Source: Rebecca billardiae RCC1528
Lineage: Eukaryota; Protista; Haptophyta
DNA: 64,000 nt
Direction: 5' to 3'
NCBI GenBank assembly: GCA_965240325.2
Contig: OZ251236.1
Coordinates: 1,302,001 to 1,366,000 of the forward strand
Part shown: one piece after another, positions 12,201 through 56,817 of the stretch
How positions within the stretch are numbered: the first letter of the stretch is position 1
Layout of the letters: each line of letters starts with the position of its first letter
Program-made: the position numbers and the translations under genes
The notes under the pieces: model-generated
The model's input: only the letters and a program-made list of their open reading frames with translations
What the model was told of the DNA's origin: nothing
Database searches by the model: none

Positions 12201-15200
12201 CGGATCTCGGTCGAGGTGCTCTCGGTCGTCGCCGGCCAGTACCTCTCGATCCTCGACGGCATCCGCTCGAAGAAGACGGTGTTCACGTTCGAGGACGACG
12301 AGATCTCGCTGAACGCGACGGTGGGCGCGTTCATCACGATGAACCCGGGCTACGCCGGCCGCACCGAGCTGCCCGAGAACCTCAAGGCGCTCTTCCGGCC
12401 GTGCGCGATGGTCGTGCCCGACTTTGGCAACATCGCCGAGATCTCGCTCAACGCCGAGGGCTTCCTCGACGCCAAGGAGCTGGGGCACAAGTTCGTCACG
12501 CTGTTCGCGCTGTGCAAGGAGCTGCTCTCGAAGCAGCACCACTACGACTGGGGCCTGCGCGCGATGAAGGGCATCCTGCGCATCGCCGGCGGCCTCAAGC
12601 GCGCCGAGCCGGACAAGACGGAGCACCAGATCCTGATGCGCGCGCTGCGCGACGTCAACCTGCCCAAGTTCGTGCTCGCCGACTTCGGCATCTTCCTCGG
12701 GCTGATCAACGACCTGTTCCCGCGCGTCGAGTCGCCGGCGAAGACGGACCCCGACTTGCAGAAGGCGATCCGCGAGGTGATCGCCAAGCCCGACTCGGGG
12801 CTGCAGCCCGAGGAGATCTTCTGCACCAAGATCGGCAACCTGGCGGAGATGCTCGGCGTGCGCCACTGCTGCTTTGTGCTCGGCGCGGCCGGCGCGGCCA
12901 AGACCAAGCTGTGGGAGACGCTCGCGGCGACGTGGACGCACATGCAGGTGGGCGGCGGCGTGACGCTCTCGCAGGCGCTCAACCCCAAGGCCATCACCGT
13001 CGACGACCTGTACGGCTACATGCACCCCGTCACCAAGGAGCCGTTTGACGGCATCATCTCCAAGATGATGCGCGACTACTCGCGCATGGAGAACCAGCAG
13101 CCCAAGTGGATCATCCTCGACGGCGACATCGACGCGGAGTGGATCGAGTCGATGAACACGGTGATGGACGACAACAAGGTGCTCACGCTCGTCTCGAACG
13201 AGCGCATCCCGCTCACCGCGTCGATGCGCCTCATCTTCGAGATCTCGCACCTGCGCAACGCGTCGCCCGCGACCGTCTCGCGCGCGGGCGTGATCTTCCT
13301 CAACGAGTCCGACATCGGCTGGCGGCCGTTCGTCACGACGTGGGTGGAGACGATGGGCGACCAGAAGGTGGCGACCACGCTCGAGCAGCTCTTCGACCAG
13401 TACGTCGCGCCCACCCTCGACCACATCCGGCGCGAGAAGTGGAAGCACGTGACGCCGCTGATGGACTTTGCGATGGTGCAGACGCTGTGCAAGCTTCTTG
13501 AGGGTCTGCTCACCAAGGAGAACGCGCCGCCCGGCTCGGACAAGGAGGTGTACGAGGCGTACTTCCAGTTCGCCGCGATCTGGGCCTTCGGCGGCGGCTT
13601 CAACGTCGAGAAGGGCAACGACATGCGCAAGCAGTTCTCCGAGTACTGGCGGCACGAGTTCTCAAAGTCGGCGGTGCGCTTCCCGGACGACGGGCTCGTG
13701 TTCGACTACTTCATCTCGCCCACGGACAAGCGGCCGGCGCACTGGAACGACAAGATCGAGGACTACAAGCACGACCCGACGGGCAAGTTCTCGGACATCG
13801 TCGTGCCCACGCTCGACACGACGCGCATCGGCTTCCTCTCCAACATGCTCGTCAACCTCGGCAAGCCGATCATGCTCGTCGGCGGGCCGGGCACGGCCAA
13901 GACGTCGCTGCTGCAGCTGCTGCTCAACAACATGCCCGAGGAGACGTCGATGCACTTCAACATCAACTTCAACTCGTTCACCGGCGCTGAGTCGCTGCAG
14001 CCGATGCTCGAGCAGCCGCTCGAGAAGAAGACGGGCTCGAGCTTCGGCCCGCCCGGCACGAAGAAGCTGATCTACTTCATCGACGACTTCAACATGCCCG
14101 CGCCCGACAAGTACGGCACGCAGTCCGCGATCGAGCTCGCGCGGCAGCAGGTGGACTACGGCGGCTTCTACGACCTGAAGAAGCTGACGTTCAAGTCGAT
14201 CATCAACACCTCGTTCGTCGGCGCGATGAACCCGCTCGCCGGCTCCTTCTTCATCATCGACCGCATGCAGCGCCACTTTGCGACGTTTGCGTCGCCGCCG
14301 CCCGAGGCGGACGTGTGCCGCATGATCTACGGCAAGATCTTCGCGGGGCACTGCGAGCGCTTCTCCAACTCGGTGATGGAGAAGACGGAGGTGATCACCA
14401 ACGCGGCGGTCAACCTGCACCTCATGGTCGCCGACACATTCCTGCCCAACGCCGTCAAGTTCCACTACCAGTGGAACCTGCGCGAGCTGAACAACGTGTT
14501 CCAGGGCATGTGCAGCACCGTGCCCGAGGTCTTCACCTCGCCGCGCCTCTTCGCCAAGCTCTTCGTGCACGAGGCGACGCGCGTGTACTCGGACCGGCTG
14601 ATCTCGGCGGAGGACACGGACAAGTTCCGCGAGCTCGTGGGCAAGGCGGTGAAGGACATCGACTTCGTCAAGACGGAGGAGCTCGTGAACGAGCCCGTCT
14701 TCTTCGCCAACTTTGCGGGCGGCGGCGAGGAGAAGATCTACGCGCCGATCGAGACGTTCGACGACCTGTCGACGATCCTGACGAAGAAGCTGTACGAGTA
14801 CAACGAGGTGAACGCGACGATGGACCTGGTGCTCTTCAAGGACGCGATGGAGCACATCGTGCGCATCTCGCGCATCATCGACGCGCCGCGTGGCAATGCG
14901 ATGCTCGTCGGCGTCGGCGGCTCGGGCAAGCAGTCGCTCTCGCGGCTGTCCGCGTTCATCTCGGGGTACACGACGTTCCAGATCAAGCTGTCGCCGACGT
15001 ACGGCATCAACGACTTCAAGGCTGACCTGCTGCAGCTGTACACCAAGGTGGGCCTCAAGTCGGACAACATGGTCTTCCTCTTCACCGACCAGCAGATCTT
15101 CCGCGAGGAGGTGCTCGTCTACTTCAACAACTTCCTCTCGAGCGGCGTGATCCCCGACCTGTACAACGAGGAGGACAAGGACACGGCGATCAACGGGATC

Positions 15201-18200
15201 CGCTCGGAGGTGAAGGCCGCGGGCCTGCTCGACTCGCGCGAGAACTGCTGGGCGTACTTCATCGACAAGGTGCGCGCCAACCTGCACGTGATCATGTGCA
15301 TGTCGCCGGTCGGCGACGCGTTCCGCGTGCGCTGCCGCAAGTTCCCGTCGCTCACTGGCTGCACGACGATCGACTGGTTCATGGGCTGGCCGCAAGAGGC
15401 GCTCATCTCGGTCGCCGCGCGCTTCCTCGAGGACGTCGAGATGGAGACGCCCGAGCACCGCGTCGCCGCGGGCCAGCACATGGCGTTTGTGCACGAGTCG
15501 GTCGGGCTGTCCGCGCAGCAGTACAAGGCGTCCGAGCGGCGCAACGTGTACACCACGCCCAAGTCGTACCTCGAGCTGATCGCGCTGTACAAGCTGATGC
15601 TCTCGATCGAGCGCGAGCGCGTCAACATGCAGACCTCGCGCCTCGAGACCGGGCTGGTCAAGCTGCGCGAGTCGTCGGAGCAGGTGGCGGACATGCAGAT
15701 CAAGCTCAAGGAGGAGTCGGCGGTCGTCGAGCAGAAGTCCAAGGAGACGGACGAGCTGATCGTGCAGGTGGGGCAGGAGTCGAACATCGCCGCCGACGAG
15801 TCGGAGAAGGCCGCGGTGGAGGAGGACAAGGTCTCCGAGATCCAGCGCGAGGTCTCCGAGTTCAAGGCGCAGTGCGAGGCCGACCTCGCCGCGGCTGAGC
15901 CCGCGCTCAAGGCGGCGGAGGACGCGCTCAAGCTGCTCGACAAGAACTCGCTGACCGAGCTCAAGTCGCTGTCGACGCCGCCCGCGCCCGTGCTCAACGT
16001 GACCGCCGCGGTCGCGTACATGATCTCGACGCCGGGCACCAACCTGAAGAAGGTGGACGTGTCGTGGAACGGCGCCAAGAAGATGATGGGCTCGCCCGAG
16101 CAGTTCTTGCAGATGCTGCTCAACTTCGACAAGGACAACCTGTGGATCGAGGCGAAGGACAACTGGGTGCGCAAGTACACCGGCCCGCCCGGCGCGCCCA
16201 ACCCCGAGTTCAACTACGACTTCATGGCGACCAAGTCGAAGGCGGCCGCCGGGCTGTGCGCGTGGGTCGTCAACATCTGCATCTACCACGACATCTTCCT
16301 CGACGTCGAGCCCAAGCGCAACAAGCTGGCCGAGGCGGAGAAGAAGCTCAAGGACGCGGACGACAAGCTGGGCACGGTGCGGCGGCAGGTGCAGGCGCTC
16401 ACCGACAAGTGCGCCGAGCTGCAGCAGCAGCTCTCCGACGCGACCGACGAGAAGAACCGGCTGCAGGAGAAGGCGCACCAGACGGCCAAGCGGCTCAACC
16501 TCGCCGAGCGGCTCGTGAACGGGCTCAAGGACGAGGGCGTGCGCTGGACGGACGGCGTGGGCGACCTCAAGTCGCGGCTCTCGCGGCTGGTGGGCGACGT
16601 GCTCGTCACCGCCTCGTTCATCGCGTACATCGGCCCGTTCAACATGACCTTCCGCCAGACGATGATCAAGGAGCAGTGGATCCCCGACCTGCTCGCGCGC
16701 GGGCTGCCCGCGTCCGAGGTGATCACGCCCGTCAAGCTGCTCACCGACGAGGCGCGCGTCGCGGTGTGGAACTCGGAGGGGCTGCCCGCCGACGCGCTCT
16801 CGATCGAGAACGGCTGCATCATCTCCACCTGCGCGCGCTGGCCGCTCATCATCGACCCGCAGCTGCAGGGCGTCACGTGGATCAAGCAGAAGGAGGAGAA
16901 GAACGGGCTGGTCTCGGTCGAGCTCTCGTCCAAGGGGTACGTCGACAAGGTGATCCGCGCGATGCAGGAGGGGCTGCCGATCCTGCTCGAGAACATCGGC
17001 GAGCAGATCGACGCGGTGCTCGAGCCGGTGATCGCGCGCTCGTTCATCAAGAAGGGGCGCAAGCTGCTCGTCAAGATCGGCGACTCCGAGCTGGACGTGA
17101 TGTCGAAGAAGGACGAGGACGGCCAGCCGACCGACCAGCCCGCCTTCAAGATGTACATCCAGACCAAGCTGCCCAACCCGCACTACATCCCGGAGATCCA
17201 GGCGCAGACGACGGTGATCAACTTCACCGTCACCGAGCGCGGCCTCGAGGACCAGCTGCTCAACGTCGTCGTCAAGAAGGAGCGGCCCGACCTCGAGGAG
17301 CAGCGGATGGCGCTGGTCGAGCAGCAGAACCAGTTCACCATCAAGCTCAAGGAGCTCGAGGACGACCTGCTGTACCGGCTGGCGACGGCGGAGGGCGACA
17401 TCCTGGCGGACGAGGAGCTGATCATCTCGCTCGAGAACACCAAGGTCACCGTGACCGAGATCAACGTCAAGGTGAAGGAGGGCAGGGAGACGGAGGTGCA
17501 GATCAACGTGGCGCGCGAGGCGTACCGCCCGACCGCGGCGCGCGGCTCGGTCATCTACTTTTTGATCAACCAGCTGAACGTGATCGACCACATGTACCAG
17601 TTCTCGCTCGGCGCGTTCAACTACATCTTCTCCAAGGCGCTCGACAAGGCCGACCCCACCGAGGACGGCCTCAAGGCGCGGTGCGAGAACCTGCTCGACT
17701 CGGTGACGTACACGTGCTTCTCGTACGTGACGCGCGGCCTCTTCGAGCGCCACCGGCTCATCTTCTCGTGCCTGCTCACGATCAAGATCCTGCAGGCGGC
17801 GGGCGAGCTGGCGATGGAGGACGTGGACCAGCTCATCAAGGCGCCCAAGATCTTCGACCGCGAGAACCCGTGCTCCGCGTGGCTGCAGGACGCGGCGTGG
17901 TTCTCGGTGGTCGCGCTCGCGCAGCTCGAGTCGTTCACCACGCTGCCGCAGGACGTCGAGGGCTCGTGGAAGCGGTGGAAGGAGTGGATCGAGTCGGAGC
18001 AGCCGGAGAAGGTGCCGCTGCCGCAGGAGTGGAAGCGGCTGGGCGGCTTCCAGCGGCTGCAGGTCATCCGCGCCGTGCGGCCCGACCGCATGATGCTCGC
18101 GATCGCGCTGTGGGTGCGCGACGCGATCGGCAACAAGTACGTCGACGCGATCCCCTTTGACCTCAAGGTCTCGTTCGAGGACTCGGGGCCGTCGGTGCCG

Positions 18201-20279
18201 ATCTTCTTCCTGCTCTCGCCCGGCGTCGACCCCGTCGTGCCCGTGCGCGCGCTCGGGCACACGCTCGGCATGACCGAGGAGGAGGGCAAGTTCGTCACCG
18301 TCTCGCTCGGCCAGGGGCAGGAGCCGGTCGCCGAGAAGGCGCTCGACCGCATGTACGTCGACGGCGGCTGGGCGATGCTGCAGAACATCGAGCTGGTGGC
18401 GCGCTGGCTGCCCAAGCTCGAGAAGAAGCTCGAGTCGCTCGCCGAGGGCGCGCACCCCGACTTCCGCGTCTTCCTCTCCGCGCTGCCGCAGCAGGTCGTG
18501 CCCGTGCCCATCCTGCAGAACTCGATCAAGCTGACCAACGAGCCGCCGTCCGGGCTCAAGGCCAACATGCTGCGCGCGTACCTCACCTTCAACAACGACC
18601 TGTGGGACTCGAGCTCGAAGCAGTCGGAGCTCAAGTCGATCGTCTTCGCGCTCTGCTTCTTCCACTCCGTCGTGTGCGAGCGGCGCAAGTTCGGCCCGAT
18701 CGGCTGGAACCGCGCGTACCCGTTCAACCAGGGCGACCTGACGGTGTGCATCAAGGTGGCGTACAACTACCTCGAGGCGAACGCAAAGATCCCGTGGGAC
18801 GACCTGCAGTACATCTTCGGCGAGATCATGTACGGCGGGCACATCACGGACAACTGGGACCGCAGGCTGTGCATGGCGTACCTCTCGACGTACATCAAGA
18901 ACGAGCTCAACGAGGGGCTCGAGCTCTTCCCCGGCTTTGCGACGCCCGGCCCGATGGGGCACAAGGACTACATGGAGTACGTGGGCGAGGGGCTCGACCA
19001 GGAGATCCCCGCGGCGTACGGGCTGCACCCCAACTCGGAGATCAACTTCATGACGAAGCAGGCCGACGACCTCTTCAAGGCGGTCGCCGAGCTGCAGCCG
19101 CGCGGCGGCGGCGGCGCGGGCGGGATGACGATGCAGGACAAGGTGAAGCGGCTGCTCGACGACATCCTCGAGCGGCTCCCCGAGCAGTTCTCGCTGATGG
19201 AGATCGAGGAGCGCATCGACGAGCGCACGCCGTACACGTCGGTGTTCCTGCAGGAGGTCGACCGCATGAGCCAGCTCATCTACGAGATGCGCCGCTCGCT
19301 CGTCGAGCTCGACAAGGGCCTGAAGGGCGACCTCTCGATGACGGAGCGCATGGAGACGCTCATGAACGCGCTCTACGACGACAAGGTGCCCGAGAGCTGG
19401 GACAACCTCGCCTACCCCTCGCTGCGACCACTCGGCTCGTGGCTGGCGGATATGCTCGCCCGGTACGCGCGCCGCGCCCCGCGTTCGCCGCGCCCCGCGC
19501 GCGCCCCGCGCGCGCCCCGCGCGCGCCCCGCGCGCGCCCCGCGCCCGGCGCGCGCCCCGCGCCCCGCGCCGCGCGCGCGCGCCTGCCGCTCAGCACCGCT
19601 CGACGCGACACCGCGGCGCCGGCCCTCGTCCCGCCCCGCAGGTACAAGCAAATCGCAGACTGGACGGGCGACCTCACGACGCCAAAGTCCACGTGGATCT
19701 CGGGGCTGTTCAACCCGCAGGCGTTCCTGACCGCGGTGATGCAGGTGACCGCGCGCAAAAACGAGTGGCCGCTGGACAATCTCGAGATCGTCGTCGAGGT
19801 GTCCAAGAAGATGACGGCCGAGGAGATCGACGCACCCACGCGCGACGGCGCCTACATCCACGGGCTGTTCGCCGAGGGCGCGAGGTGGGATATCAACGGC
19901 AACTCGCTCGACGACGCGTTCATGAAGCAGCTGTACCCGCCGCTGCCCGTCGTGCTCGTCAAGTCGGCCATGTCCTCGGTGCGCGCCGCGCGCGCGTCTG
20001 CCCGCCGCGCGCGCCGCGCACGTCCGGCCGCTTGCCGAGCGTCCCACCCGACCCGAGCGGGCGTCCGCACTCACACACGCCGCCGCCGCGCCGTGCCGCG
20101 CCCATCCGCCCAACTCGCCGCAGTCTACGAAGGAGACGAAGGACGTGTACAAGTGCCCTGTGTACAAGACGCAGTCGCGCGGCCCGACCTTTGTCTTCAC
20201 AGCTGGCTTGAGGACAAAAGCCCCACCGGCAAAGTGGGTGCTCGCGGGCCTCGCGCTGGTCATGGATGTCGTGGAGTGA
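6243..20279 (+). CDS. Outer-arm dynein heavy chain, beta type (ODA4/DNAH9-11-17 class), complete, 3 introns
   Basis: DHC_N1/N2 tail; AAA1 GPAGTGKTET; CFDEFNRI; ITMNPGYAGRTELPENLK; HYDWGLR; AAA4 GVGGSGKQ; stalk; C-terminus YKCPVYKTQSRGPTFVFTAGLRTKAPPAKWVLAGLALVMDVVE*. Introns are 8400-8573, 19463-19641 and 19979-20123, all GT-AG. Confidence 0.96.
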
Positions 20280-20934
20280 TGATGAGACATGAGTCGTGAT
20301 CACTATATATATATATTGCTGACTACTATACTGATAGCTTACCGGTATACAGTTTACTGCGCGCCCTTATCGTCCCCTGACGAGAAGGTTACATCCGCAC
20401 ACCTACTAGACGCTGATAGTAACACCTAGTACGACGCGGAGGATAATCAGATTCGTCACTGGAGACAACGAAACATCCGAAGGCCTCAAACCACACACAC
20501 ACAAATATATATATAATTTAATGTCAAAATATATAGAACACAAAATTAAAAACCAAAATAAAATTCACGCACCATTTACGCATGCCAACGGCATCATGAT
20601 CATTTTTATTACTATCTAAATTTTATTTTGATAGTAACATTGTTATTACTAACTAGTATAATGACGTTGTTACTGCTATAGTTAGTAGCATTGGTAGCTA
20701 TCTCGGTAGTGACACTGTCACTACTAAGCTAGATCTATACTTCAATCTATACTTGCTATAATACTATACTTCAATCCCGGTCAGTCATCTCAGACATTGA
20801 TAGATAGATATCCGACTCGAGTCGTCTCGGCGTCTGTCATTCTCTTGAAAGTTATTCTGGCGTCCGCCGGAACAGTCATCAGCATAGTCTAGCTGCTCTC
20901 TCTCTCTGTCTCTAGCTAAGCTGCTACTAGAATC

Positions 20935-20980
20935 ATTATCATCATCATCATCCATCATCATCATCATCATCATCATCATC
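20935..20980 (+). repeat. (ATC)n microsatellite within an AT-rich stretch
   Basis: atcatcatca tccatcatca tcatcatcat catcatcatc. Confidence 0.9.
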
Positions 20981-21084
20981 GTCGTCGTCTGAATAGTAAA
21001 GCTTGTTACAAAGTACGACTACTAAATATACTAACTTTAGCGTGTATCTGTGAAGTCCTGTCTAACTACCCGTTCGACCGCCTA

Positions 21085-21540
21085 TGCCCTATCCGGACGG
21101 GGCATCGAGCTCGAGCCAGGCCCGCATCCAGACCTGCGTGTAAAGTTGCAAAGTGTAAAGTAGGTCCGGGAGCCCAGCCGGACTTGTCCGGCCAGTCCGA
21201 CCGGACGCGTGCCAGCTGCCACCGGGCCCGGCACTCTCCGGCGCCTCCGCCCGGCGCCGGCCGGTCGCCGGGGCGCCGCGGCCGAGAGGCAGTGCAAAGT
21301 TGTAAAGTGTAAATTACATCCGGGAGCCAGGCCGGACCTATCCGGACAGCCGTCCGGCCACGCACGCGTGCGGGCTGTGCCGACGCGCCGCGCCGGCCGG
21401 CTGCCGGGCGCACGAGGGCGTGTATGACAGTGTGAAAAAGTAAATCCGGGCGCCTCCGGACGGGGCATCGCGCGCCGCGCAAGCTGCTTGGCCCAGCAAC
21501 CCCCCGTAAAAGTTGTAAAGTGTAAAGTAAGTCCGGGGCT
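21085..21540 (-). repeat. Diverged inverted copy (~2 dimeric units) of the CTTTACA satellite
   Basis: Four TGTAAAGTTGTAAAGTGTAAAGTA-like cores (~21139, 21293, 21421, 21506) with reverse-complemented spacers, e.g. ggtccgggagcccagccggacttgtccggccagtccgaccggacgc. Confidence 0.9.
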
Positions 21541-21584
21541 TTCGCGGGTCCAATCCGGGATCCCGCAGCCCGAGCGGCGGCGCG

Positions 21585-23100
21585 ATGTTCGCCGCCATGG
21601 TCGATGGTGTTCGCAAGCACGTTCAGAAGCCGCCCGCCCTCGACGACGCGATCTGCACGTGCGCGCGTTGGTCAGAGCACACGCGTGACGTGGGTGAGTC
21701 GGGGGACTACCCACTACGAAGCAAAGTAGAGCGTGAAGCAAGGTAGAGTGTGTTTCCGCGTGCGCGCTCGGGCAGCTCTGCTGTGACCCCTCGGCCACGT
21801 CGTGATGTGTGCGTCCGCGCGCACGGCCACGCCAGCGTGGCCAGTGCGCTTCCTCTTCAACGACACCAACGAGCTCGCCCTGGCGCACAACGTTGGCAGC
21901 AGCGCCGTGACTACACGGCTGCTGGTGGTGCGCGTGTCCGGTTGGCCACACCCTCGTGACTCTGCGGCTGCGCGCAGAAGCAGCGCCACCGGCGTGCTGC
22001 TGCCTGCCGGCATGCTGGTGGCGCCCGCGCCCGCGCCGCCGCCGCCATTTTGTGACCGTCCCACAGTGCGCCCCGCTGCATGCGCCTTGTGGCGCGCGTC
22101 CGGTTGGCCACAGCCTCGTGACTCTGCGGCTCTGCGGCTGCGCGCACAAGCAGCGCCACCGGCGTGCTGCCGCTGCCGGCATGCTGATGGCGCCCGCGCC
22201 CGCGCCGCCGCCGCCATTTTGTGACCTTCCCGCGCCGTGCGCCCCGCTGCATGCGCCGTCTGGGGCGCGTCCGGCTGACCGCAGCCTCGTGACTCTGCGG
22301 CTGCGCGCGCAAGCATCGCCACTGGCGTGCTGCCGCTGCTCGCATGCTGATGGCGCCCGCGCCCGCGCCGCCGCCGCCATTTTGTGACCTTCCCGCGCGG
22401 TGCGCCCCGCTGCATGCGCCGTCTGGGGCGCGTCCAGTTAGCCACAGCCTCGTGACTCTGCGTCTCTGCGGCTGCACGCGCATCTACCGCGGCGGGCTGC
22501 GCCTGCTGTTCACGGCCAAGGCGGACGGCGAACCCCGTACATCCCCGCCGCGGTCGTTGCCACCGCCGGCGACGGCGTCGTGCGCTGCGAGTGGCTTGCG
22601 CGCCTGCCCGCGTGGCACGCCCTCCGCACCCGCACTGTGCCCGCGGCTTGGCCCACACGCGTGCACAACGAGGCGGTCGAATGGGCAGCGCGTGCGTAGA
22701 CGGCACCTGCGCCGTCGGGTCAGCGCCGCCCGTGCGCCGGGCGTGCGCACCTTCCCGCCTCGCCAGCTGGCGCGCGAACCGCCCTCGCCGCGTGGCTAAA
22801 CGAGCAGCTCGGCTCGCGCGGCGCGGGCGAGCCGATCAGTGCGCGCCCGGCGGCGCCGGGCGCTGGCCGCCGATTACGCGCGTGTACGCGGGGCGCTCGC
22901 CGGGTCTACTCGCGACGTGCTCGACGGCGAGTCGATGGTGTGACTACAAGCGCAGTGAGCACTGGCGGCGGATTGTCTTCTACTTCGCCAAGCTAGACGG
23001 CATCGACCTCTGCTGCGTGGACGACGCGTGTGTCCACGCGCACGGCCGCGCAGGCGCAGCTGCCGTGCGCCTTCGTGGCTTCCTTTTGACGGTGCCGACG
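21585..23100 (+). pseudogene. Decayed archaeo-eukaryotic primase (PrimPol / NCLDV A468R-like) with a C-terminal UL52-type Zn finger
   Basis: Collinear fragments: TTH...GRV.F (from 21706); TPAWPVRFLFNDTNE (to 21873, at the motif-I position); IYRGGLRLLFTAK (22482-22520); PYIP after a frameshift (22535); STASRWCDYKRSEH...IVFYFAKLDGIDLCCVDDAC (22921-23031). Stops and frameshifts are present. Confidence 0.55.
21931..22478 (+). repeat. Tandem repeat, unit ~165-175 bp, ~3.3 copies
   Basis: Recurring cctcgtgactctgcggctgcgcgc...gcatgctgatggcgcccgcgcccgcgccgccgccgccattttgtgacc...gccccgctgcatgcgcc. A further degenerate piece lies near 23280-23340. Confidence 0.9.
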
Positions 23101-23674
23101 GGCTCGCCCCCTCACCACGCGTGGCCTGCGCGGCCGTGCAGCGCGGGCACGGTGGCTCGCGCGGCAAGGCGCCGGTTGCGCGCTCGCAGCAGTTTGCAGC
23201 CCTCCGGCGCGCGGCGTTTGCTGCAGCGCCGTGACCACGCGGCTGTGGGCCGCGCCACTGGTGCTGCTGGCCGCCGCGGCCATGCCGCCGCCGCCATGAT
23301 ACGACCTTTTCGCGCTGTGCGCCCCGCTACACACAGCATGCGTGGACGACCGCGCTGCGCCTCGCGCCAAATGGCGCCCAGCAATACGGATGCGCACTGC
23401 ACACTGCGTGCAGCGGGTTGAACGGCCCTGGCTGTGGCGTGCAACGTGCGCCGTAGAGGCGTGACTCGCCAGCCCGCGGCGGGCGTAGCGCGCGCACGCA
23501 CGGGCGAGCAGCACTACTGCGTGTTGCTCAGCCGCGCCCGCGCCGCGCCATCGGTAGGTGGTGGCGCCCTCGACCGGTATCGAATCGCCCTCCCTCACCT
23601 ACCTCCCTCGCCCGGGCGGGTCGATCGCGGGCGCCGGCATCGCGATCAAATCGCGTCCGGCCGCGTCGTCCCGC

Positions 23675-25471
23675 CCGGACTTACTTTACACTTTACAACT
23701 TTACAGGCCCTCTCGCGCCCGCGGCCCGGCGGCGGCGCGGCGGCCGGCGGGCCAGCATGCGTCCGGTCGGACTGGCCGGACATGTCCGGCTGGGCTCCCG
23801 GACCTACTTTACACTTTACAACTTTACACGCCGGGCTGGGTGCTGGCCTGGCTCGTGCTCGATGCCCCGTCCGGACGTGCGCTCCCGGACCTACTTTACA
23901 CTTTATACAACTTTACAGGCCCTCTCGCGCCCGCGGCCGGCCGGCCGGCGGCGCGGCGGCCAGCATGCGTCCGGTCGGACTGGCCGGACATGTCCGGCTG
24001 GGCTCCCGGACCTACTTTACACTTTACAACTTTACACGCCGGGCTGGGTGCTGGCCTGGCTCGTGCTCGATGCCCCGTCCGGACGTGCGCTCCCGGACTT
24101 ACTTTACACTTTACAACTTTACAGGCCCTCTCGCGCCCGCGGCCGGCGGCGCGGCGGCCAGCACGCGTCCGGTCGGACTGGCCGGACATGTCCGGCCGGG
24201 CTCCCGGACCTACTTTACACTTTACAACTTTACACGCCGGGCTGGGTGCTGGCCTGGCTCATGGTCGATGCCCCGTCCGGACGTGCGCTCCCGGACCTAC
24301 TTTACACTTTACAACTTTACAGGCCCTCTCGCGCCCGCGGCCGGCGGCGCGGCGGCCACGGCATGCGTCCGGTCGGACTGGCCGGACATGTCCGGCTGGG
24401 CTCCCGGACCTACTTTACACTTTACAACTTTACACGCCGGGCTGGGTGCTGGCCTGGCTCGTGCTCGATGCCCCGTCCGGACGTGCGCTCCCGGACCTAC
24501 TTTACACTTTACAACTTTACAGGCCCTCTCGCGCCCGCGGCCGCGGCGGCGCGACGGCCAGCATGCGTCCGGTCGGACTGGCCGGACATGTCCGGCTGGG
24601 CTCCCGGACCTACTTTACACTTTACAACTTTACACGCCGGGCTGGGTGCTGGCCTGGCTCGTGCTCGATGCCCCGTCCGGACGTGCGCTCCCGGACCTAC
24701 TTTACACTTTATACAACTTTACAGGCCCTCTCGCGCCCGCGGCCGGCCGGCCGGCGGCGCGGCGGCCAGCATGCGTCCGGTCGGACTGGCCGGACATGTC
24801 CGGCTGGGCTCCCGGACCTACTTTACACTTTACAACTTTACACGCCGGGCTGGGTGCTGGCCTGGCTCGTGCTCGATGCCCCGTCCGGACGTGCGCTCCC
24901 GGACTTACTTTACACTTTACAACTTTACAGGCCCTCTCGCGCCCGCGGCCGGCGGCGCGGCGGCCAGCACGCGTCCGGTCGGACTGGCCGGACATGTCCG
25001 GCTGGGCTCCCGGACCTACTTTACACTTTACAACGTTACACGCCGGGCTGGGTGCTGGCCTGGCTCGTGCTCGATGCCCCGTCCGGATCTGCGCTCCCGG
25101 ACCTACTTTACACTTTACAACTTTACAGGCCCTCTCGCCCCCGCGGCCGGCGGCGCGGCGGCCAGCATGCGTCCGGTCGGACTGGCCGGACATGTCCGGC
25201 TGGGCTCCCGGATCTACTTTACACTTTACAACTTTACACGCCGCGGGCTGGGTGCTGGCCTGGCTCATGGTCGATGCCCCGTCCGGACGTGCGCTCCCGG
25301 ACTTACTTTACACTTTACAACTTTACAGGCCCTCTCGCGCCCGCGGCCGGCGGCGCGGCGGCCAGCATGCGTCCGGTCGGACTGGCCGGACATGTCCGGC
25401 TGGGCTCCCGGACCTACTTTACACTTTACAACTTTACACGCCGGGCTGGGTGCTGGCCTGGCTCATGGTCG
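23675..25471 (+). repeat. Tandem satellite: 9 dimeric units of ~200 bp (18 AT-rich cores alternating with two GC-rich spacers)
   Basis: Core CCGGACCTACTTTACACTTTACAACTTTACA is followed alternately by spacer A (ggccctctcgcgcccgcgg...gccggacatgtccggc...) and spacer B (cgccgggctgggtgctgg...gtccggacgtgcgctc). Confidence 0.97.
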
Positions 25472-26132
25472 CGCCAGCCAGATCAGTCGCGCGCGCGCGG
25501 CGGCACTGCGCGCGCGCGGGGCGCGCGTGCCTTTCCTAGAAACTTCCGCAGAGCCGCGAGAAGGTTACACTTTACATAGTGACAGGGCTGGACCAGGCTT
25601 ACTAGTTACACATAGGAGACCACGACGTTACATATAGGAGGCATAGGCTACATTTCTACTATACGGCTTTTCTGGGGGGTGTAACCTTCTCGTGACAGGA
25701 CCACCACCCTGCGCGCTAACGCTCGCATATCAATCAAGCAGCGCTGCTGGCTGACGTCTCAACTCAGACGAATGTCTATATATATATATATATGTGTGTG
25801 AGTATAGATGACAGGATTCGTGCTGTAGTGACGATCGCGCGAGCCGCGCCGCGAGCCAACGAACCGCGGCAACCGCGTTACCGCCGACCGCGCGCGACCG
25901 TCACCGTGCGCGCGGGCCACTCGGGGCTAGCTGCGTCGAACCGCCGTGCCGAGTGCGGCGACTCGGATACAGATTGGTCAGAGAGCCCGCAAGCCGTGCT
26001 ACGTCTCAGCACGCCGAGCGCGAGGTCATTCGATACGCCACCGGGGTAGCGGCGCACCAACGCCACGAATAAGTTAGGATGATGATGTACGCGTGCACGG
26101 TGCCGGCACGTCGATCGCGCGCGCTGCTCGTG

Positions 26133-27225
26133 TCACAAGCGCTTGAGGCTCTTCTTTTTTTCGAGCTTGCGCTTGTCTATCAAGCTCTGCTCGTCCTTGC
26201 CCGGCCGCTGCTTCTTCTGCTGCTGCATCGCGTCCGCGCTCGACGAGCCCGCGTGCTCCGCCGACGAGGCGCCGCCCTCGGCGTTCGAGTCACCGCGGTC
26301 CGCGAGCTTGGGCCGCGCGTGGATGTCGCACAGGAGCCGCGCCTGCTTGGCGTACTCGACGTAGTCCTCCATGAAGAGCTTCGCCGCGTCCTCGTTCAGG
26401 GCGGACTCGGGGAAGGGGTTGATGAGCAGGCAGCGCACCACCTGCGCGAGGTCACGCCGCGCGCGTGCGCGCCGCGCCGGCGCGCGTCAGCCGCGCGTGG
26501 CGGTGCGGCAGGCGGCGCTGGGCGGCGGCGCGCGTGGCAGCGGCGCGGGGCACGCGCCTGCATGATGTGCCCGAGCGCAATGTCCTGCTTCCAGTCGCGC
26601 TTGAGCGTGTTCACGCAGATCTCGCCCGTCTTCGAGATGTTCGGGTGGAAGATCCTTGTTTGGAAGTACCCTGCGCGCGCATCGCCCGGCCAGGCGCTCG
26701 GAGTGAGTGGGGGCCAGCCCGCGCGCCGGGCCGCGCGCGCGTAGGCCGCGCGGGCACGCACCCTTGGGCGGCGACGCGGGAAAGTCGAATGGAAGGACTA
26801 GCTTCACTCTGAAGACGCCACCCTCGTACGGCGTGCCCTCTGCGCGCGTCGCGAGGGCGCCGGGCGCCACAGCGTGGCATCAGGCCGCGGAGCTGCCAGG
26901 TGGCAGGGTGGCACGGCGAGCGCGAGCGGCCGCGTGCCGCGCACCCGGCCCCTCAATGTCGATCCGGATGTCGGTCACGTCCTCCTCGTTCAGATGGATC
27001 TTGATGCCGGCAGGGGGCGACATTGAGAGCTTGCGCAGCTCCTTCGCGACGCCGCTCACCACCGCAGGAGCGATGTTCTCGTTTGACTGCGGGAGGGCGG
27101 CATGCGCACGGCGCGCGCGCACATGCGCACGCGCGGTCACGACGTCAAGGCCGCGGCGAGAGGCGCAGACGGCCTGGACCACACTGGCAAGGTGTGCACG
27201 CTCAGCGAGCCAGCGCACGCACCAT
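26133..27225 (-). CDS. UBE2S: Ubiquitin-conjugating enzyme E2 S, 5 exons
   Basis: Spliced product: M|SNENIAP..V.KELRKL...DIEGP|[14 protein letters not shown]...FPASPPK|[27 protein letters not shown]...HIMQ|[27 protein letters not shown]...KKKSLKRL*, ending in the typical UBE2S basic tail. Introns are 27222-27087, 26944-26840, 26761-26671 and 26557-26442 (GC donor). Confidence 0.93.
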
Positions 27226-27585
27226 CGTGGTCAGATGCCCGCGAGTACGGCAGCGGACGGGGGCGTGTGGGCTCGCGCAGGCAGCAGGAGCCTGTGGCGG
27301 GCGCTTGGAGGTCGCCACTGCTCGACGCTCGCTGCGTTCAGGCTGTGTTCATCTATTTTCGCTGAAACGCCAAGCGAAAGTCGCGGCCTTTTTTCCCAGC
27401 AGGATGAAAACATTTACTTTCCGACTTTTTGTCGGGCTTCGCGCCTTCGGCAGCAAGTAAAAGTTGAGAAAGCTCGGCGATGCCGATGAGCGCCCTCCCC
27501 AACCAACTCCAGAGCGTCGGCGGAGGCCGCACAAGGCGACTACAGTCGTCACACGGTCGTGCTTCGTTGCATCGTCGCCCGGCAC

Positions 27586-28680
27586 TCATTTCGTGTGCCG
27601 GCAGTTGCCCCAGATCTGGCCGCACTGCGTGCACAGGCGGCGGCCGTCGGGCGCGCGCTTTTGCGCGAGCTGCGCCTTGCGCTCGGCCGCTGTCTGCCTG
27701 CGCCGGCTCGGGTCAGAGGCGTCGCGCATCGCGTGCGGGAGCTCGGCGGCGGAGGCGGCGAGGGTGCAGCCCGGCGCATCCGCGCTCCCACCGCCCTCGC
27801 CCTCGCGCCCGGGCCCCTCGCGCCACCACGCCAGCACCACCTCGCGCAGCTGCCCCGGCAGCTTGAGGTACCAGAACGACACAAACGGCGCCGTCACCGC
27901 GCCCGACGAGCCCGAGCCCGCGCGCCGGCGCTCGCCCGCGGCGTTGTGCGCGCCCCGCGGCGAGGTGTACTTGTACCGGAAGGGCGGGCAGAGGTAGCAC
28001 GGACGCGCCGCGCCGAACCCGCTCGTGCCGTAGTACGCGCGGCAGTACACGTACGAGGGCATGAGCAGCAGGCACGGCTGGGCCGCGCGTGCGCAGAAGC
28101 TGAGCAGCCGCTCCACGTGGTCGGCCGTGTACGGCGGGTTGGTCACGAGCACGTCGAAGGCCGGGAGCGCACCGCGCGAGGCGGCGGCGTAGAAGTCCTC
28201 GTTCCGGTTGTACACGCTGCTGAACCCCAGCCCGGCCAGGTGCCTCGCCACAGAGCCGGCGCAGTAGTAAGGGTCGTAGATACGCAGCTCTGAACGCGAC
28301 TTGCCGAGCGAACGCGCCAGCCGGTCGAGGATGGGCGAGATGTGCTCGTACGCGACGAAGGGCGTCTCGGCGTGATCCGCGTCGCACGCTGGGAATGAGT
28401 AGCGCTCTGGCCGCGCCGGGCGCTGCTCGACGCCCTCGTCGCGTGCATGCGGCTGCTTCACTCGACGAGGCTCCTCGCCCTCCGGCGGGGACGGGCGCGG
28501 GCGCTTCCGCTCCTTGTGCCGCTGCACGGCGACCCTCGCGTCGGGCGTGGCAGGTGCATGCGCTGGGCAGTCCTCGTGCCTCACTGCTGGCGCCGCCGCA
28601 TCGGGCTTGTCCCTCTGCCTCCGCTTCCGCTTCTTCACTCTCCTCTTCTTCATCGTCGCGCCCAGCTCGTCCGCCGCCAT
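27586..28680 (-). CDS. NPPY-motif SAM-dependent amino-methyltransferase (N6-adenine MTase-like) with a basic NLS-like N-terminus and a C-terminal CCCH Zn-knuckle-like motif
   Basis: DHAETP, IYDPYYCAG (motif I-like), EDFY, DVLVTNPPY (motif IV), LLLMP; MKKRRVKKRKRR; CTQCGQIWGNCRH. Confidence 0.75.
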   Translation of the reverse strand: MAADELGATMKKRRVKKRKRRQRDKPDAAAPAVRHEDCPAHAPATPDARVAVQRHKERKRPRPSPPEGEEPRRVKQPHARDEGVEQRPARPERYSFPACDADHAETPFVAYEHISPILDRLARSLGKSRSELRIYDPYYCAGSVARHLAGLGFSSVYNRNEDFYAAASRGALPAFDVLVTNPPYTADHVERLLSFCARAAQPCLLLMPSYVYCRAYYGTSGFGAARPCYLCPPFRYKYTSPRGAHNAAGERRRAGSGSSGAVTAPFVSFWYLKLPGQLREVVLAWWREGPGREGEGGGSADAPGCTLAASAAELPHAMRDASDPSRRRQTAAERKAQLAQKRAPDGRRLCTQCGQIWGNCRHTK

Positions 28681-29231
28681 CGTGGACCGAGACTTAGAAA
28701 GCCGCCAGCGTTTTAGCACTGTCTTCTGCCCGATTTTCCTTATTCCTTTTCCTTTAGTTCATCGTTTCGGGTTCTCGGGCCCAGGCCGCTGCCCAGTGGC
28801 CGGGCGGGCGCCGCGGCCCCCCCGAGCTGATCAAGAGCCGGCTCGGTCTCGGGACGACGTCCGACCGGGCGACCGAGGTGACCAGTGCGGGCTCGGAGAG
28901 TTCGTCCGCATAGAGTGCCGCACCGGGGACTCAGGCGCTCCCCGTCGAGACCCGTACAAGACTCTACTAACACGTGTGCTCAGCCCACGCTAGTCCTCAG
29001 GTGCTACTGCAGACCACTGAGTGCTGATGGTGTGCTAGCAGAGGGCCTGTCGCGCGTCGCGCGGCAGGCGCTGATAACGCGCCGGCCAATCAACAGTCCA
29101 CGCCGCACCGAGCCGGCGCCCGCAGTCAGCGGGCGCGCGGAGGGAGCTCAGCGGCCGGGGTGGCCGTGCGCTGCCCCCCGCGATCGGCGATGGCGGGCCA
29201 CTGCCGTGCGCTGTCGGTCGTAATGCGCCGC

Positions 29232-30240: not shown

Positions 30241-33200
30241 ATGGTGCTCGAGGGCTTCGTCGCGAAGGCGCTGAGCGGTGCCCTCGGCGAGTGGCTCGAG
30301 GACATCACGCCGGACCGGCTGCACGTCGGCGGCCTGAGCGGCGACGTGCAGCTCGAGAATCTGAGCCTGCGCGTCGGCGCGATCGTGCCCGGACCGCTGC
30401 CGCTCGCCGTGCGCGGCGGGCGCGTGGGGCGGCTCGTGCTGCGCGTGCCGTGGGCCCACCTCTCCTCCCAGCCCACCGTCGTCCAGCTGCACGACCTCGA
30501 TGTCACGCTCGCCATCGCGGGCGCGCAGGAGGCTCACGCGGGGCCGCGGATGCGCCGCGCGGCCGCCGCGCCGCCGCCGCGAATCGAGCCAAAGTCGGTC
30601 GCGAAGGCGCTGCGCAACTTGCACGTGGCGGTGCACCGCGTGCGCATCCGCCTCCTAGCGCGCGCGGGCCCGCTCGACGAGCCGTACGCCGAGGCGGCCG
30701 CACCGACACTCGCCCTGAGCCTGTGTCTGGACAGGCTCAGCCTGGCCTCTCGGGATGGGCCGCGCCCGCACCACGCCGCCGAGCACGCCGCGGCGGCGGG
30801 CGAGGGGCGAGGCGCGAGCGAGCGGCAGCCCGCGGGCCCCGCCGCCGCGCCGAGCGAACCCCGCCCGCTCGGCGACAACGGCACGCGCGGGAGCGGCCGC
30901 GGCGGCGCGGACGCACCGGACGCGGCCGGCTCTGCGGCCGAGGGGGTGCCTCTTGCGCTGAGCAAGACGCTGACGCTCGACGGGCTGGCGGTGCGCGTGC
31001 TCGAGCTGGGGCACGCGCCCTCGGCCGAGGCGCTGCGCACGGCGGGGCTCCCGGGCGCGCCCGTGCCCGGTAGATCCCCCGGCGCGACAACGGGCGCGGC
31101 CGCTGGGCCTGCGCACAGCGCCGCGCCGAGCTGGCCCGCGCCGGCGGGCACGGCGGTGGCGCTGAGCGGGAGCGCGGCCGGCGCGGCGGACGACGGCGCG
31201 GTGCTGGGGCCGCTGAGCGCGCGAATCGAGTGCGAGCTCAGCCTCCCGCCGTGCCCGGACGAGCGCGCGCTCGCCCGCGCCGCGCAGCACGCCTCTGCCG
31301 GCGCGGCCGCGGGCGGCGCGGCTGGCGGCGCGAGCGGCGCTGCGCACAGCGTGGCGGACGCCGATGCGGCCGACGCGCACGCGGCGGCGGCGGCGCGGGA
31401 GGAGCGGCTCCGGCGGCGGCGGCAGGCGCCGCCCGCGCAGCTTGCCCTCAGCATCTCGGACCTCGCGCTCCGCCTCGACCGCTCCCAGTGCGCCGCGCTG
31501 CTCTGGCTGGCGGCCGCGTGCGCCGCGCCGCTGCGCGCCGCGCTCGCTCAGTGGCCTCCGCTGCCGCCCGCGCGCGCCGTGCGCGAAGGCGGCGCGCGGC
31601 AGTGGTGGGCGTGGGCCGCGCACGCGTGGCTGCACGAGACGCGCGCGCACGCAGCGGCCGCCGCCGCCGCCACGCCCGCGCTGCGCGCCCACGCCACCCC
31701 GGCGGCACCCGCAGCGCACGGCGCGCGCCCGGCGGCGCGCGCGCGGCGCGTGAGCGCCGTGCTGTGCACCGCGCTCGCCTGCCGGCTGCTCGTGGAGCGG
31801 GAGCTGCAGGCGGCGGCGGCGATGCGGCAGGCGGGCGCGGCGGCGGCCGCCGCGCGCGTGCGCGCTCAGCTGCGCGCACGGCGCCTCGGCCGGGTGCTCG
31901 GCGCCGAGCGCGCGGCCGCGTGCGCCGCCGTCGCGGCGGCCGAGGCGGCGGCCGCGGCCGCGGCCGCGGCCGCGGCGCCGGGCCTTGCCCAGAGCGGCCG
32001 GCGGATGAGCGGGGACGGCGGTACGCCCCCGGCACTCGCGCCCGCGGCCGCTCTGGGCCCGTGGCTGCTGCCCGCCGCCGCGTGCGTGCGCGTGCACCTG
32101 TCGCACTGCGCGCTCTCGCTGGACGCGCGGCCGTGGCGCGGCGGCGGCCGCGGCGGCGGCGGCGTCGGCGGTGACGGCGGTGGCGGCGGTGGAGGCGGTG
32201 ACGGCGGTGGCGGCGGCTTGCAGGGCCATCGGCTGCCGGGGCGGGGAGGCGAGGGCACGGGGCTCGAGCGTGGCGGCGTGGCCGACGATGCAGCGCACGA
32301 GGCGGAGGCTGACGAGCTGCCGCCCCTGCCCCTGCCACCGCCGCTCCTCCTCGCTGCCTCCGCGCGCTGCCTTCCCCTCGACACCGCCGCGCACGCGGCC
32401 GGCACGCTAGGCGCGCACGCGGCGGGCGCGCGCGCCGCCGAGCTTCGGGTTGAGGTGCGGCTGCGGCTGAGTGAGCACGCGGCGCCGACGGCGCGCGCCG
32501 AGCGCGCAGAGTCGGCCGGGCTGGGCGGCCTCGCCCTGCCCCTCGCGCGCGTCCCCAGCGAGCCCGCCTCGCCAGCCACAGGCGGTAGCGGCGGGGCGCC
32601 GCTGCCGTCCGCGCGCGCGTTGGCGGACGCGCGCGCAGCACAGCAGCCGCGCGGCCTCGGCATCGGGGGGCGGCTGCTGCGGCTGGGCGCTGCGCCGCAC
32701 GCGGGGCGTGGGCCCGCGCCGCTCGGCGCGGGCGAGCGCGGGCGCGCGCCGGGCGCCGAGCGGCCCCGGCCCCACTCGCCGCCGCCGCCGCCGCGCGTGC
32801 GCGTGCAAGCCGTAGCCCTCAGCGGCAGCGCGGCAAGTGTGCAGCTCAACTTCCGCTGCGCGCCGCTGCGCCCGCCCGCGGCCGCGCCCGCCGAGCGCGC
32901 GCGCGCCGGCGGCGGCGCAGGGGCAGAGACGCCGCGCGCCGCGACGGGGGGCGTCGGCGGTGCCGTCGGCGCGCTCGCGCGCCCTCGCTGCCGCGCGCGC
33001 GCCCTGCTCTGGGCGCGTGAGCTGAGCTTCAGCCTCAGCCCGCCGCCGCCGCCCGCGCGCGCGGGCGCGGACGCGGGCGCAGCCGCAGAGGGCGCGGCGG
33101 GCACGCGGGGCTCAGCCGCGGCCTCGGCGGGGCGCGCGCGCGCCACGCTGAGCTGCCGCGCGCGCGAGCTCGCGCTGGACGTGTGCGACGGACGCGCGGC

Positions 33201-34068
33201 CGAGGGGCGCGGCGGCGAGGGCAGGAGGCCGCCGCAGCCGCCTCCGCCTCCGCCGCCTCCGCCTGAGGCCGCGGCGCGCGCCGAGCACGGAGCTCCGTCC
33301 GCGGCGGCGGCGGCGGCGGCGGCGGCGGACGCGCCGAGCACGCCGCCGGTGGCTGCCGGCGTGGCCGTGGCAGCCACTGCCGGCGGCACGGCTGCGCTGC
33401 GGGCAGGGCTGGCAGGGGGCGGCACGGGCGGCGCGGACGGCGGCGGCGCCGACCCGCCTCGCCATGCCGACTCGTCCGGCGGCGGCGGCGGCGCGCCTCT
33501 CGCGCGGGCCGTCGACATGGCCGTGACGGTGGCATGGGGGCCAGAGGCGGCGGCGGCGGGCGTGCGCGCGGGCGGCGGCGGCGCGTGGCTCGGCGCGGAG
33601 CCGCCGGCGGGTGCATCGCCGCCGCCGCCGCCGCCCGCGCGCGTGCAGGTGCGCGCCGCGCACGGCTGCGTCGGCCTCAGCGCGGGCGCGGCGCCCCCTC
33701 TGCTTGCTCTGGCGCACGCGGCGGCCGTGCTGGCGCGCGGCCGCGTGTCGCGCGCCGCCATGTCGGCGGCGGCGACGCGCGGCGCGCCGATGCTGCGCTC
33801 GGCGTCCTCCAGCCGGCTGAGCCGCGCGGGCTCCGAGCGCTCTCTGCTGCACGCGCGCGGCTCACTCGGCGGCGGCGGCGGCGGCGCGTCCCGACTGCGC
33901 ACGCGCGCCGCCTCCTCCGTCGCGCTCCCGGAGGCGCCGGGCACGCCACTGCCGCCGGCGGCGGCGGCGCCGACCGCGCCGTCAGCCGGCGCGGAGATCG
34001 ACGTGAGCCTCGACAGCGCGCTCGTCGCGCTGGCCACCGCGCCGCCGCCCCAAGCCGCGGCCGGCTGC

Positions 34069-34099
<31 letters not shown>

Positions 34100-35493
34100 G
34101 CGCGTGCGAAGACTCGAAGGGCGGCGCCGATTGCGCAGCGGGCGGCGCCCCGGCTGTGGCGCACGCGGCGTGCGTGACGGCGCGCGCGCTGCGCGTGCGC
34201 TGCTCGCTCGCGGCTGACGGCGACGGCGGCGCGCTCGAGCCTGGGCGGCCGGCGGCCGACGCCACGCCGCGTGCGCCGGAGGGCACGACGCACGCCGGCG
34301 GCGCGTGCGAGCGCACGCCGCCGTCGCGGCCGACAGTTGCGCCTGAGCCGACGCCCTCGCCGCTCGCCGCTGACGAGCCGGGCGGCGCGCCCGCCGCGGC
34401 ACTCCCGCTGGTGAGCGCGGAGGTGTGCGCGCGCGCGTGCTCGCTGTCCGTCCTGCCGATGGCGGCCGGCGGCGCGGCGGGCGCGGCCGGCGGCGCGCGC
34501 CTGCTGTGGCTGAGCGCACCCGCGCCGCACGGCGGCGGTCGGGGCACGCAGCAGACCGGCGGCGCGGCGGCGGGCGGCGCGGCCGCCGATGGCGGCGGCG
34601 CGCCGCAGGCGCTCGCGGAGAGCGCCGGCACGGCGCTGCGCGTGTGCGTGCGCATGTGCGCGGGTCCGGCGCCGCGCCCCGCGCACGCCGGCTCGGCGCC
34701 GCGCACGCCGCCCCACGCGCGGCGCGGCTCCACTCCCGCGCACGGAGGCGCGCCGTTGCACGCGCACGCGCCCGCGCGCTCGCTCGGCGCCACCTCGCTC
34801 AGCGTGTCGGCGGTGCTCGGGCGCGTGTGCGCGCGCGCGGGCGCGTGCGAGTGGGCGGTGCTTGCGCCCGGGCTCCGGTGGGTGCCGACGCTCGCGCCGC
34901 TGCTCCCGCCCGCGCCGGCGCGCGTCCAGGTGAGCGTCGAAGCGCCCTCCGCGCTCGCGGCGTGGACCCCTGAGCACACGGCCGCGGCCGCGGAGCCCAC
35001 CGCCGGGCCCGCCGCCGGGCGCGACGCCGGGCCCGACGCTGAGCGCGACGCCGACGCGGGCGCGGAGGCGCGGCTCGTGCGGTGCGCGCTGCTCCTCGCA
35101 GTCGACGTGCGCACTGACGTGGCGGCTCAGAGCGTGCGCTGGGCGAGCGCGCGCGCGTCTGTGCAGCGCCTGGAGGCGGCGGCGGCGCGGTGGGCGCGGC
35201 CAGCGCGGGCGGCGCCGGCGGCGCCGAGCGAGCAGCGGGCGGCGCCGTGCGCGGCGCCGCCGCTCCGCCGCGCCCTCGCGCTGCGCGGCTGCGAGGCGCG
35301 CGCGACCATCGCCGCGCGAACGCTCGCTCTCGACCTGAGCACCGCAGGGGCCGTGCACGTGTGCGCGGCAGAGTTGATGCGGTGGCGCGTGCGGCCGGCC
35401 GCGGCGGCGCGCGCCGACGGCGGCGGCGGCGCGGACGGCGGCGGCGGCGCACGCGCGGCGGGCGCGGCCGCGCGCGCGCCGACGCAGGCACGC

Positions 35494-35548
<55 letters not shown>

Positions 35549-41500: not shown

Positions 41501-41779
41501 CCGCCCCCGCCGCCTCCGCCCCCTTCGCCCCGCCCGACGGCGTGCACGCCCGCGCCCACCTCGCCAGACTCCACCTGTGCCTTCTCGACGCGTGCGGCCG
41601 CGAGGCGCTCGTAGGTACGCTCGGCGGCGCGGTGGCGGACTGGGAGCGGGGCGCGGCGCCGTGCGTGCCGCTGCGCGTGCGCGCGACGGCGAGGCAGCTG
41701 CAGGTCGACCGCGGCCGCCGCGCGGCGCGGCCCGCCAACGCCGGCGCCGCCGGTGGCTCGTCTGGCGCGCGCACGGCGC

Positions 41780-41826
<47 letters not shown>

Positions 41827-44668: not shown

Positions 44669-44699
<31 letters not shown>

Positions 44700-56774: not shown

Positions 56775-56817
56775 GCCCAGGCCTGTGCCCACCCCCGCGG
56801 CGTATGTCTGTCCGCGT

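Follow-up and report, generated by a model that had tools for sequence, protein, structure and literature searches.

The DNA analysed here, hereafter the window, is a stretch of 64,000 nucleotides from the haptophyte Rebecca billardiae RCC1528 (assembly GCA_965240325.2, contig OZ251236.1, positions 1,302,001 to 1,366,000 of the forward strand). GC content within the window varies from 57 to 84% (2-kb bins) around a genome background of roughly 70%, and the host genes are giant and almost without introns. This composition and the many single-exon genes agree with the description of the Diacronema lutheri genome, which has 73% GC, 45% single-exon genes and 22.9% repeats (PMC8379373). An open reading frame (ORF) at 6243-19730 on the plus strand encodes a complete outer-arm dynein beta heavy chain, and about 100 bp 3' of the dynein stop codon begins a 5.3-kb intergenic repeat island (20380-25693) that is the subject of this work.

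The preliminary description of this island had proposed a mobile element in which a viral-type primase gene lies between inverted, iteron-like arrays and the whole is bounded by a 14-bp inverted motif. The layout is as that description gave it: a motif search located the 14-mers at 20380 (+), 25556 (+) and 25680 (-), and within them lie an AT-rich stretch, two opposed CTTTACA arrays and, between the arrays, a decayed coding remnant. Also in agreement, domain searches of the island and of the 3.4 kb on its right side turned up no transposase, HUH Rep, integrase or capsid. We favour, with some reserve, a different interpretation, in which the locus is an immobile, decayed repeat island 3' of the outer-arm dynein beta gene that holds the relic of a duplicated ORF unit together with an unrelated satellite.

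The ORF unit and its orphan family

The centre of the island is made up of about 1.5 copies of a tandem unit of ~1.2 kb plus a 163-bp sub-array. This repetitiveness, which was absent from the preliminary description, is seen both in the 163-bp array and in a diverged duplicate pair of ~400 bp (21690-22090 and 22920-23330). Two independent short-read contigs (L001 and L137, from Logan ERR14847149 and ERR14847150) match 22406-23703 at 99.8-99.9% identity and break exactly at the arrays, which confirms the centre and its junctions as real. A foldback artefact of assembly would not have arms as diverged as these.

The coding remnant was compared with proteins both as pieces, searched one by one, and as the 276-aa ORF at 22591-23418. 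Against protein P0002, the three plus-strand pieces cover 162 of 281 residues at ~40% identity, with no stop within any piece. When the 276-aa ORF was searched with phmmer against 1.84 billion representative proteins, the matches were its own short-read copy, P0002 (281 aa), P0004 (114 aa) and P0003, the last of which was rejected as a false positive inflated by repeats. The 90% clusters of P0002 and P0004 add P0126 and P0127 to the family, and word-index protein searches with the window ORF and P0002 returned self matches only. Neither an intact parent gene nor a paralogue was found among the 1.84 billion representatives, using a decayed query.

The family members lie on short contigs of 1.2-1.9 kb and 67-71% GC, taken from Logan SRR24310115 (L126), SRR24310122 (L127) and SRR22250839 (L135), and from ERR4195064 and an ENA metagenome (L128 and L136). 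From their composition, these contigs are presumed to be Pavlovales-like; the three lineages represented include at least one Pavlovales alga, that of the window. The family has so far been seen only in such GC-rich sequences. The state of the copies differs from contig to contig. The copy in L136 contains a single frame change and a single stop, and the copy in L135 and L126 is open, which proves little because long open frames arise easily at such GC. About 200 bp beyond the L136 copy there are long ORFs on the opposite strand, not named by Pfam and without counterpart in the window. The first ~24 bases of L126 (1-24) appear to be a remnant of a transposase-library adapter and thus not genomic.

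In all three lineages the homology begins at one shared point, and a GC-rich box of the CATTTT type, CA(Y)TTTT, stands 70-100 bp upstream. The shared starting point suggests that the unit that was inherited, or that spread, already had the short form. In L126 and L135, box units flank the ORF on both sides, ~1.3 kb apart, and the window remnant also has box units on either side. The preliminary description would have had the end motif, satellite and remnant travel together. In L126, L128, L135 and L136, no CTTTACA heptamer was found, nor any 14-mer with two mismatches allowed. The ORF unit is thus found in the absence of both satellite and end motif, an outcome that the preliminary description had named as speaking against its own proposal, here in a comparison made across species and on contigs of 1.2-1.9 kb only. 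Family members occur as separately decaying copies with differing neighbours in three lineages, and no intact parent was found, a pattern more in keeping with a selfish origin than with a host pseudogene; the family most likely began as a selfish element.

Table 1. Features of the repeat island, with positions in the window
Feature	Position	Strand	Description
14-mer, left copy	20380..20393	+	exact match
AT-rich spacer	20394..21090	.	26-46% GC; CA/TA microsatellites; (ATC)16 at 20932-20980; no credible ORF
Left degenerate CTTTACA-triplet array	21091..21562	-	3-4 cores at irregular spacing of 154 and 213 bp
Partial duplicate (ORF unit, 3' part; downstream box unit)	21690..22090	+	~70% identity; offset ~1.2 kb from the main copy
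163-bp x 3.1 tandem array	21960..22479	+	unit consists of the GC-rich CATTTT box and the degenerate first ~40 bp of ORF homology
Orphan ORF-family remnant (P0002/P0126, P0004/P0127)	22460..23106	+	three pieces, two frame changes
Single diverged box unit	23249..23331	+	3' of remnant; 76% to 163-bp unit
Right array	23674..25471	+	198-bp unit x ~9; 398-bp dimer x 4.4
Right-end 14-mer pair	25556..25693	.	25556-25569 (+), one mismatch; 25680-25693 (-), exact inverted; 110-nt spacer

The primase and viral labels

Two features are invariant across the family alignments (A2 and A5), namely a D..IY...LRLPF.SK stretch and a C-x6-H-x17-C-x4-C pattern; the window remnant has both, the former as 'IYRGGLRL'. 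We take the first to resemble motif III of the AEP primases and the second to resemble the CHC2 zinc finger of UL52/PrimPol proteins, a putative likeness that the library searches did not confirm. Searches of Pfam, NCBIfam, PHROGs (E-values up to 10) and PDB, the latter with both phmmer and profiles, gave no primase match for the window ORFs, P0002, P0004, P0126 or P0127, and the ORFs of the centre have no match of any kind in Pfam, PHROGs or PDB. AEP motifs I (acidic, DxD/DxE) and II (sxH) are absent from every copy of the family. Upstream, where motifs I and II would lie, stands GC-rich box-repeat DNA that is non-coding.

Structure prediction was uninformative as to the primase label. AlphaFold models were poor, both for P0002 (a 3-row alignment, pLDDT 38.8) and for the zinc-finger piece of the window (5 rows, pLDDT 50.1), and Foldseek searches with these models returned noise. 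The resemblance to the herpes-pox/PrimPol clade of AEP proteins (PrimPol, the herpesvirus UL52 type and the N-terminal domain of D5 from nucleocytoplasmic large DNA viruses, NCLDV) is limited to the two motif patterns; no Pfam, PDB, profile or fold match was obtained, motifs I and II are missing, and the family starts just before the motif-III-like stretch. Of the 'decayed AEP primase' of the preliminary description, the decayed coding remnant of an orphan family stands, and the primase is not confirmed, as no profile or structure library names one.

The viral label fared no better. Scans of prokaryote genomes and tblastn searches of phages and plasmids revealed no relative, and every library search was blank. 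A scan of IMG/VR with the ORF alignment produced a single match, out of frame with the capsid gene of a GC-rich phage, which was discarded as an artefact. The primase label rests on two short motif patterns, and neither the viral nor the primase label is demonstrated.

Satellite arrays, the 14-bp motif and the surrounding DNA

The right array has the marks of a tandem satellite, i.e., head-to-tail units, high identity and higher-order periodicity. Tandem Repeats Finder described it as a 198-bp unit repeated 8.7 times with 95% matches (23732-25471), which corresponds to the nine forward units of the preliminary description, or as a 398-bp dimer repeated 4.4 times from 23674. Within each 198-bp unit lie two CTTTACA-triplet cores, at spacings of 87 and 111 bp, together with a 14-bp palindrome, CCGGACATGTCCGG. 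At a higher order the array repeats with a period of 806 bp, and copies at that offset are 98-99% alike. Folding of a unit dimer as single-stranded DNA gave a structure moderately more stable than those of shuffled sequences (z = -3.1).

The 22-mer that contains the CTTTACA triplet occurs 16 times on the plus strand (23684-25438); the minus strand has three degenerate occurrences (21139-21527). The reverse-oriented left array is thus present as had been described, along with the AT-rich microsatellite stretch that separates it from the left 14-mer. The left array can be paired with the right one over up to 130 nt at 84-93% complementarity, and the inversion is therefore probably older than the growth of the right array. 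Their outer edges differ in register. The array core was not found in IMG/VR viral contigs, and a metagenome scan with it gave four single matches. Two of these, on the JGI metagenome contigs L004 (1500-1626) and L005 (23-154), have in common a 130-bp palindromic CTTTACA/TGTAAAG cluster, 92% alike and located at the contig ends, with the heptamer polarity of the window (TGTAAAG to the left, CTTTACA to the right); they showed no other similarity to the window.

The 14-mer had been described as the boundary of an element. A single 14-bp inverted pair is at chance level in this DNA, as the window has a second such pair of complex, low-GC sequence, no more than 6 kb apart and inside the dynein gene; only the presence of three copies, seen in 0 of 100 shuffles, exceeds chance. 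Even with up to 2 mismatches allowed, the 64-kb window contains no fourth copy, and scanning IMG/VR with the 14-mer yielded >85 single chance matches, which are uninformative. Sequences beside the 14-mers have no similarity to each other inward or outward in either orientation, and the 110-nt spacer of the right pair does not resemble the left end. No target-site duplication of any length flanks the 14-mers. TA microsatellites lie 65-85 bp outside both ends and are common in the window; they are not a duplication. The arrays begin ~700 bp from the left 14-mer and 85 bp from the inner right copy. As a target-site duplication is missing, the similarity of the ends stops at 14 bp and the arrays are out of register, these ends do not support an element bounded by the motif.

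The forward right 14-mer at 25556-25569 runs directly into a CTTTACA heptamer, and for this reason the 14-mers are most plausibly what is left of an old array edge; transposon termini are a less likely reading. A second sequence overlaps the left 14-mer: a 12/14 match (CCCCTGACRAGARG) at 20374-20387, which is also found on the same strand upstream of the ORF in L135 (~287-300) and L126 (~119-132). There the match sits at a transition from AT-rich to GC-rich sequence and could be due to chance or mark an old unit boundary.

The window is nuclear DNA of a Pavlovales haptophyte; a trypanosomatid host, which the giant intronless ORFs could suggest, is rejected by the dynein matches. The nearest named relative of the dynein is the 'flagellar outer dynein arm heavy chain beta [Pavlovales sp. 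CCMP2436]' at 87% identity, and the next, from Prymnesium, is at 65%. Homology to the CCMP2436 protein continues past the ORF end at 19730 in another frame, as far as ~20279, with a stop near 20279. A CG-rich microsatellite (19466-19615) lies at the dynein frame change, which probably reflects a short intron or an assembly indel. Synteny with the CCMP2436 orthologue stops at the dynein stop codon, the CCMP2436 contig is full of Ns, and two further close dynein contigs end at the dynein gene or just beyond it. No second copy of any part of the island was found elsewhere in the 64-kb window.

To the right of the island, ~3.4 kb of host-like, GC-rich DNA (25700-29230) with long open frames on both strands extends towards a ferredoxin gene; these open frames have no match in Pfam or PDB, and the interval may be either an orphan gene or non-coding DNA. 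The plus-strand ORF at 30241-45453 comprises 5070 codons with VPS13 N-terminal and PX domains and is 80-84% GC over ~14 kb, extreme even here. The window also includes ferredoxin, kinase and FtsH genes. The ORF at 56785-58080 has four RTX/HemolysinCabind calcium-binding nonapeptide repeats, a domain unusual in algal nuclear genes. Neither an Rfam search nor a tRNA scan found anything.

Origin of the island

The history that we tentatively favour would start from a core unit of ~1.2 kb, in which a GC-rich CATTTT box is followed by an ORF of ~240 codons with a possible AEP motif-III-like stretch and a CHC2-type pattern. This unit may have been duplicated in tandem here, giving about 1.5 copies and the 163-bp sub-array derived from its 5' edge, and the duplicated unit would then have decayed through frameshifts. 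A separate 198-bp CTTTACA satellite would have come to lie on both sides in opposite orientation through an older inverted duplication, now 7-16% diverged, and the right arm may later have grown by unequal exchange, which would account for the 806-bp higher-order period and its copies that are 98-99% alike. The right array resembles ordinary satellites in its head-to-tail 198-bp units, its 398-bp dimer, its near-identical 806-bp period and its signs of unequal exchange. It differs from them in being short (1.8 kb), in lying in a gene-dense region and in having an older inverted partner on the far side of a gene remnant.

Several considerations weigh against this history. An AT-rich block, iteron-like arrays and a replication-type gene together would have the look of a replicon origin. 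The selfish origin of the ORF family rests on the missing intact parent, and the search for that parent used a decayed query. Three 14-mer copies just outside the arrays are unlikely by chance, and the old array edge is no more than an inference. As the contigs of the relatives are only 1.2-1.9 kb long, arrays at a greater distance would be missed, and the copy number and co-occurrence given for this species cover the 64-kb window.

The look of a replicon origin leads to an explanation that we consider unlikely, in which the island is the relic of a small integrated replicon, plasmid-like or virus-derived, with a primase-polymerase-related gene, CTTTACA iterons and an AT-rich unwinding region; tandem units of ~1.2-1.3 kb would then reflect integration as a multimer. 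The ORF patterns would be typical of AEP motif III and the UL52/PrimPol CHC2 finger, the array cores are short direct repeats beside a 14-bp palindrome in a unit whose dimer folds more stably than shuffles, a block of 26% GC adjoins the arrays, and the centre of the window's island is a tandem ORF unit of the kind that box units flank in L126 and L135. However, the ORF is named by no library, and relatives of it were found neither among viruses nor among prokaryotes; motifs I and II are missing in every copy, and the homology starts equally late in three lineages. The arrays and the ORF do not occur together in the relatives, the ORF is 65-80% GC like the host whereas recent viral insertions are low in GC, and searches of the island detected neither a capsid nor a helicase or integrase. 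Polinton-like viruses that are integrated in the genome and have primase-helicase genes are reported from protists including haptophytes, among them D. lutheri, and the host group also carries virophages and NCLDV-like dwarf viruses, some of the haptophyte integrated viruses having primase-helicase genes, inverted repeats or flanking tandem repeats (PMC10120064; bioRxiv 10.1101/2022.07.28.501842). Those viruses are 15-40 kb long with capsid, ATPase and integrase genes and usually a GC content below that of the host, whereas the island is 5.3 kb and host-like in GC, and scans of the island and adjacent DNA found no domain of a capsid, packaging ATPase, polymerase, primase-helicase or integrase. 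A related proposal would make the island one case of a new Pavlovales family of small selfish units (~1.2-1.3 kb), each consisting of the conserved box and a protein of ~240-280 codons from the C-terminal half of a PrimPol/UL52 protein, integrating or amplifying as tandem multimers and joined here by iteron-like CTTTACA arrays and a 14-bp inverted end motif; we regard this as quite improbable.

The inverted arms raise the separate question of a non-autonomous DNA transposon of the foldback or terminal-inverted-repeat type, with 14-bp inverted ends and arms built of subrepeats, which would have captured part of a gene and be moved by an unseen transposase acting in trans. The island as a whole is indeed enclosed by an exact 14-bp inverted pair, with a third copy near one end; a gene fragment lies between inverted arms of tandem units, and the island occupies intergenic DNA directly 3' of a gene. 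As in the Drosophila foldback (FB) elements, the arms are inverted, unequal and tandem-built, the centre is non-repetitive relative to the arms, and there is no transposase inside. In FB elements, however, the arms extend to the very ends and a target-site duplication stands on either side, whereas the arrays of the island end 85-700 bp short of the 14-mers, out of register and with no duplication. The background level of such inverted pairs, the absence of similarity on either side of the 14-mers, the single copy in 64 kb with no transposase in the island or nearby, and the absence of the 14-mer from the relatives' contigs likewise count against a transposon, which is quite unlikely. Helentron/DINE-1 elements share with the island short inverted repeats in subterminal position, an additional inverted copy close to one end, tandem repeats in the centre and the absence of a target-site duplication. 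The island differs in having no Rep/helicase remnant and no Helitron-type terminal bases, in being flanked by G and G rather than T/T or A/T, and in a hairpin loop of 110 nt; the Helentron or Mutator-like identity suggested earlier was not borne out by any defining feature. It is also doubtful that the island is host DNA only, never selfish, i.e., a pseudogene of a fast-evolving host family in a satellite-bearing intergenic region. The GC content of the remnant is that of the host, long frames stay open easily at this GC, so that the open ORF of L126 and L135 shows little, and the D. lutheri genome is reported to be 22.9% repetitive (PMC8379373). On the other side, neither the 1.84 billion representatives nor the word search supplied an intact parent or paralogue, the copies in three lineages have different neighbours, and the upstream box and the unit boundary are conserved along with the ORF.

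If the ordinary reading holds, that of a decayed ORF-unit relic and an unrelated satellite, then nested tandem duplication and inversion can mimic a terminal-repeat transposon, which calls for caution in the annotation of repeats in compact algal genomes of 70% GC. The lasting interest lies in the orphan ORF unit and its conserved box. Decaying copies of the unit occur separately in three GC-rich lineages, at least one of which is a Pavlovales alga, and it has no named relative. To our knowledge, the mobile DNA of haptophytes has barely been catalogued. Were the ORF unit to be tied to primase-polymerases, it would represent an undescribed lineage of selfish elements in haptophytes, and if the proposal of small selfish units should prove true, a new kind of primase-related mobile or replicating element of eukaryotes.

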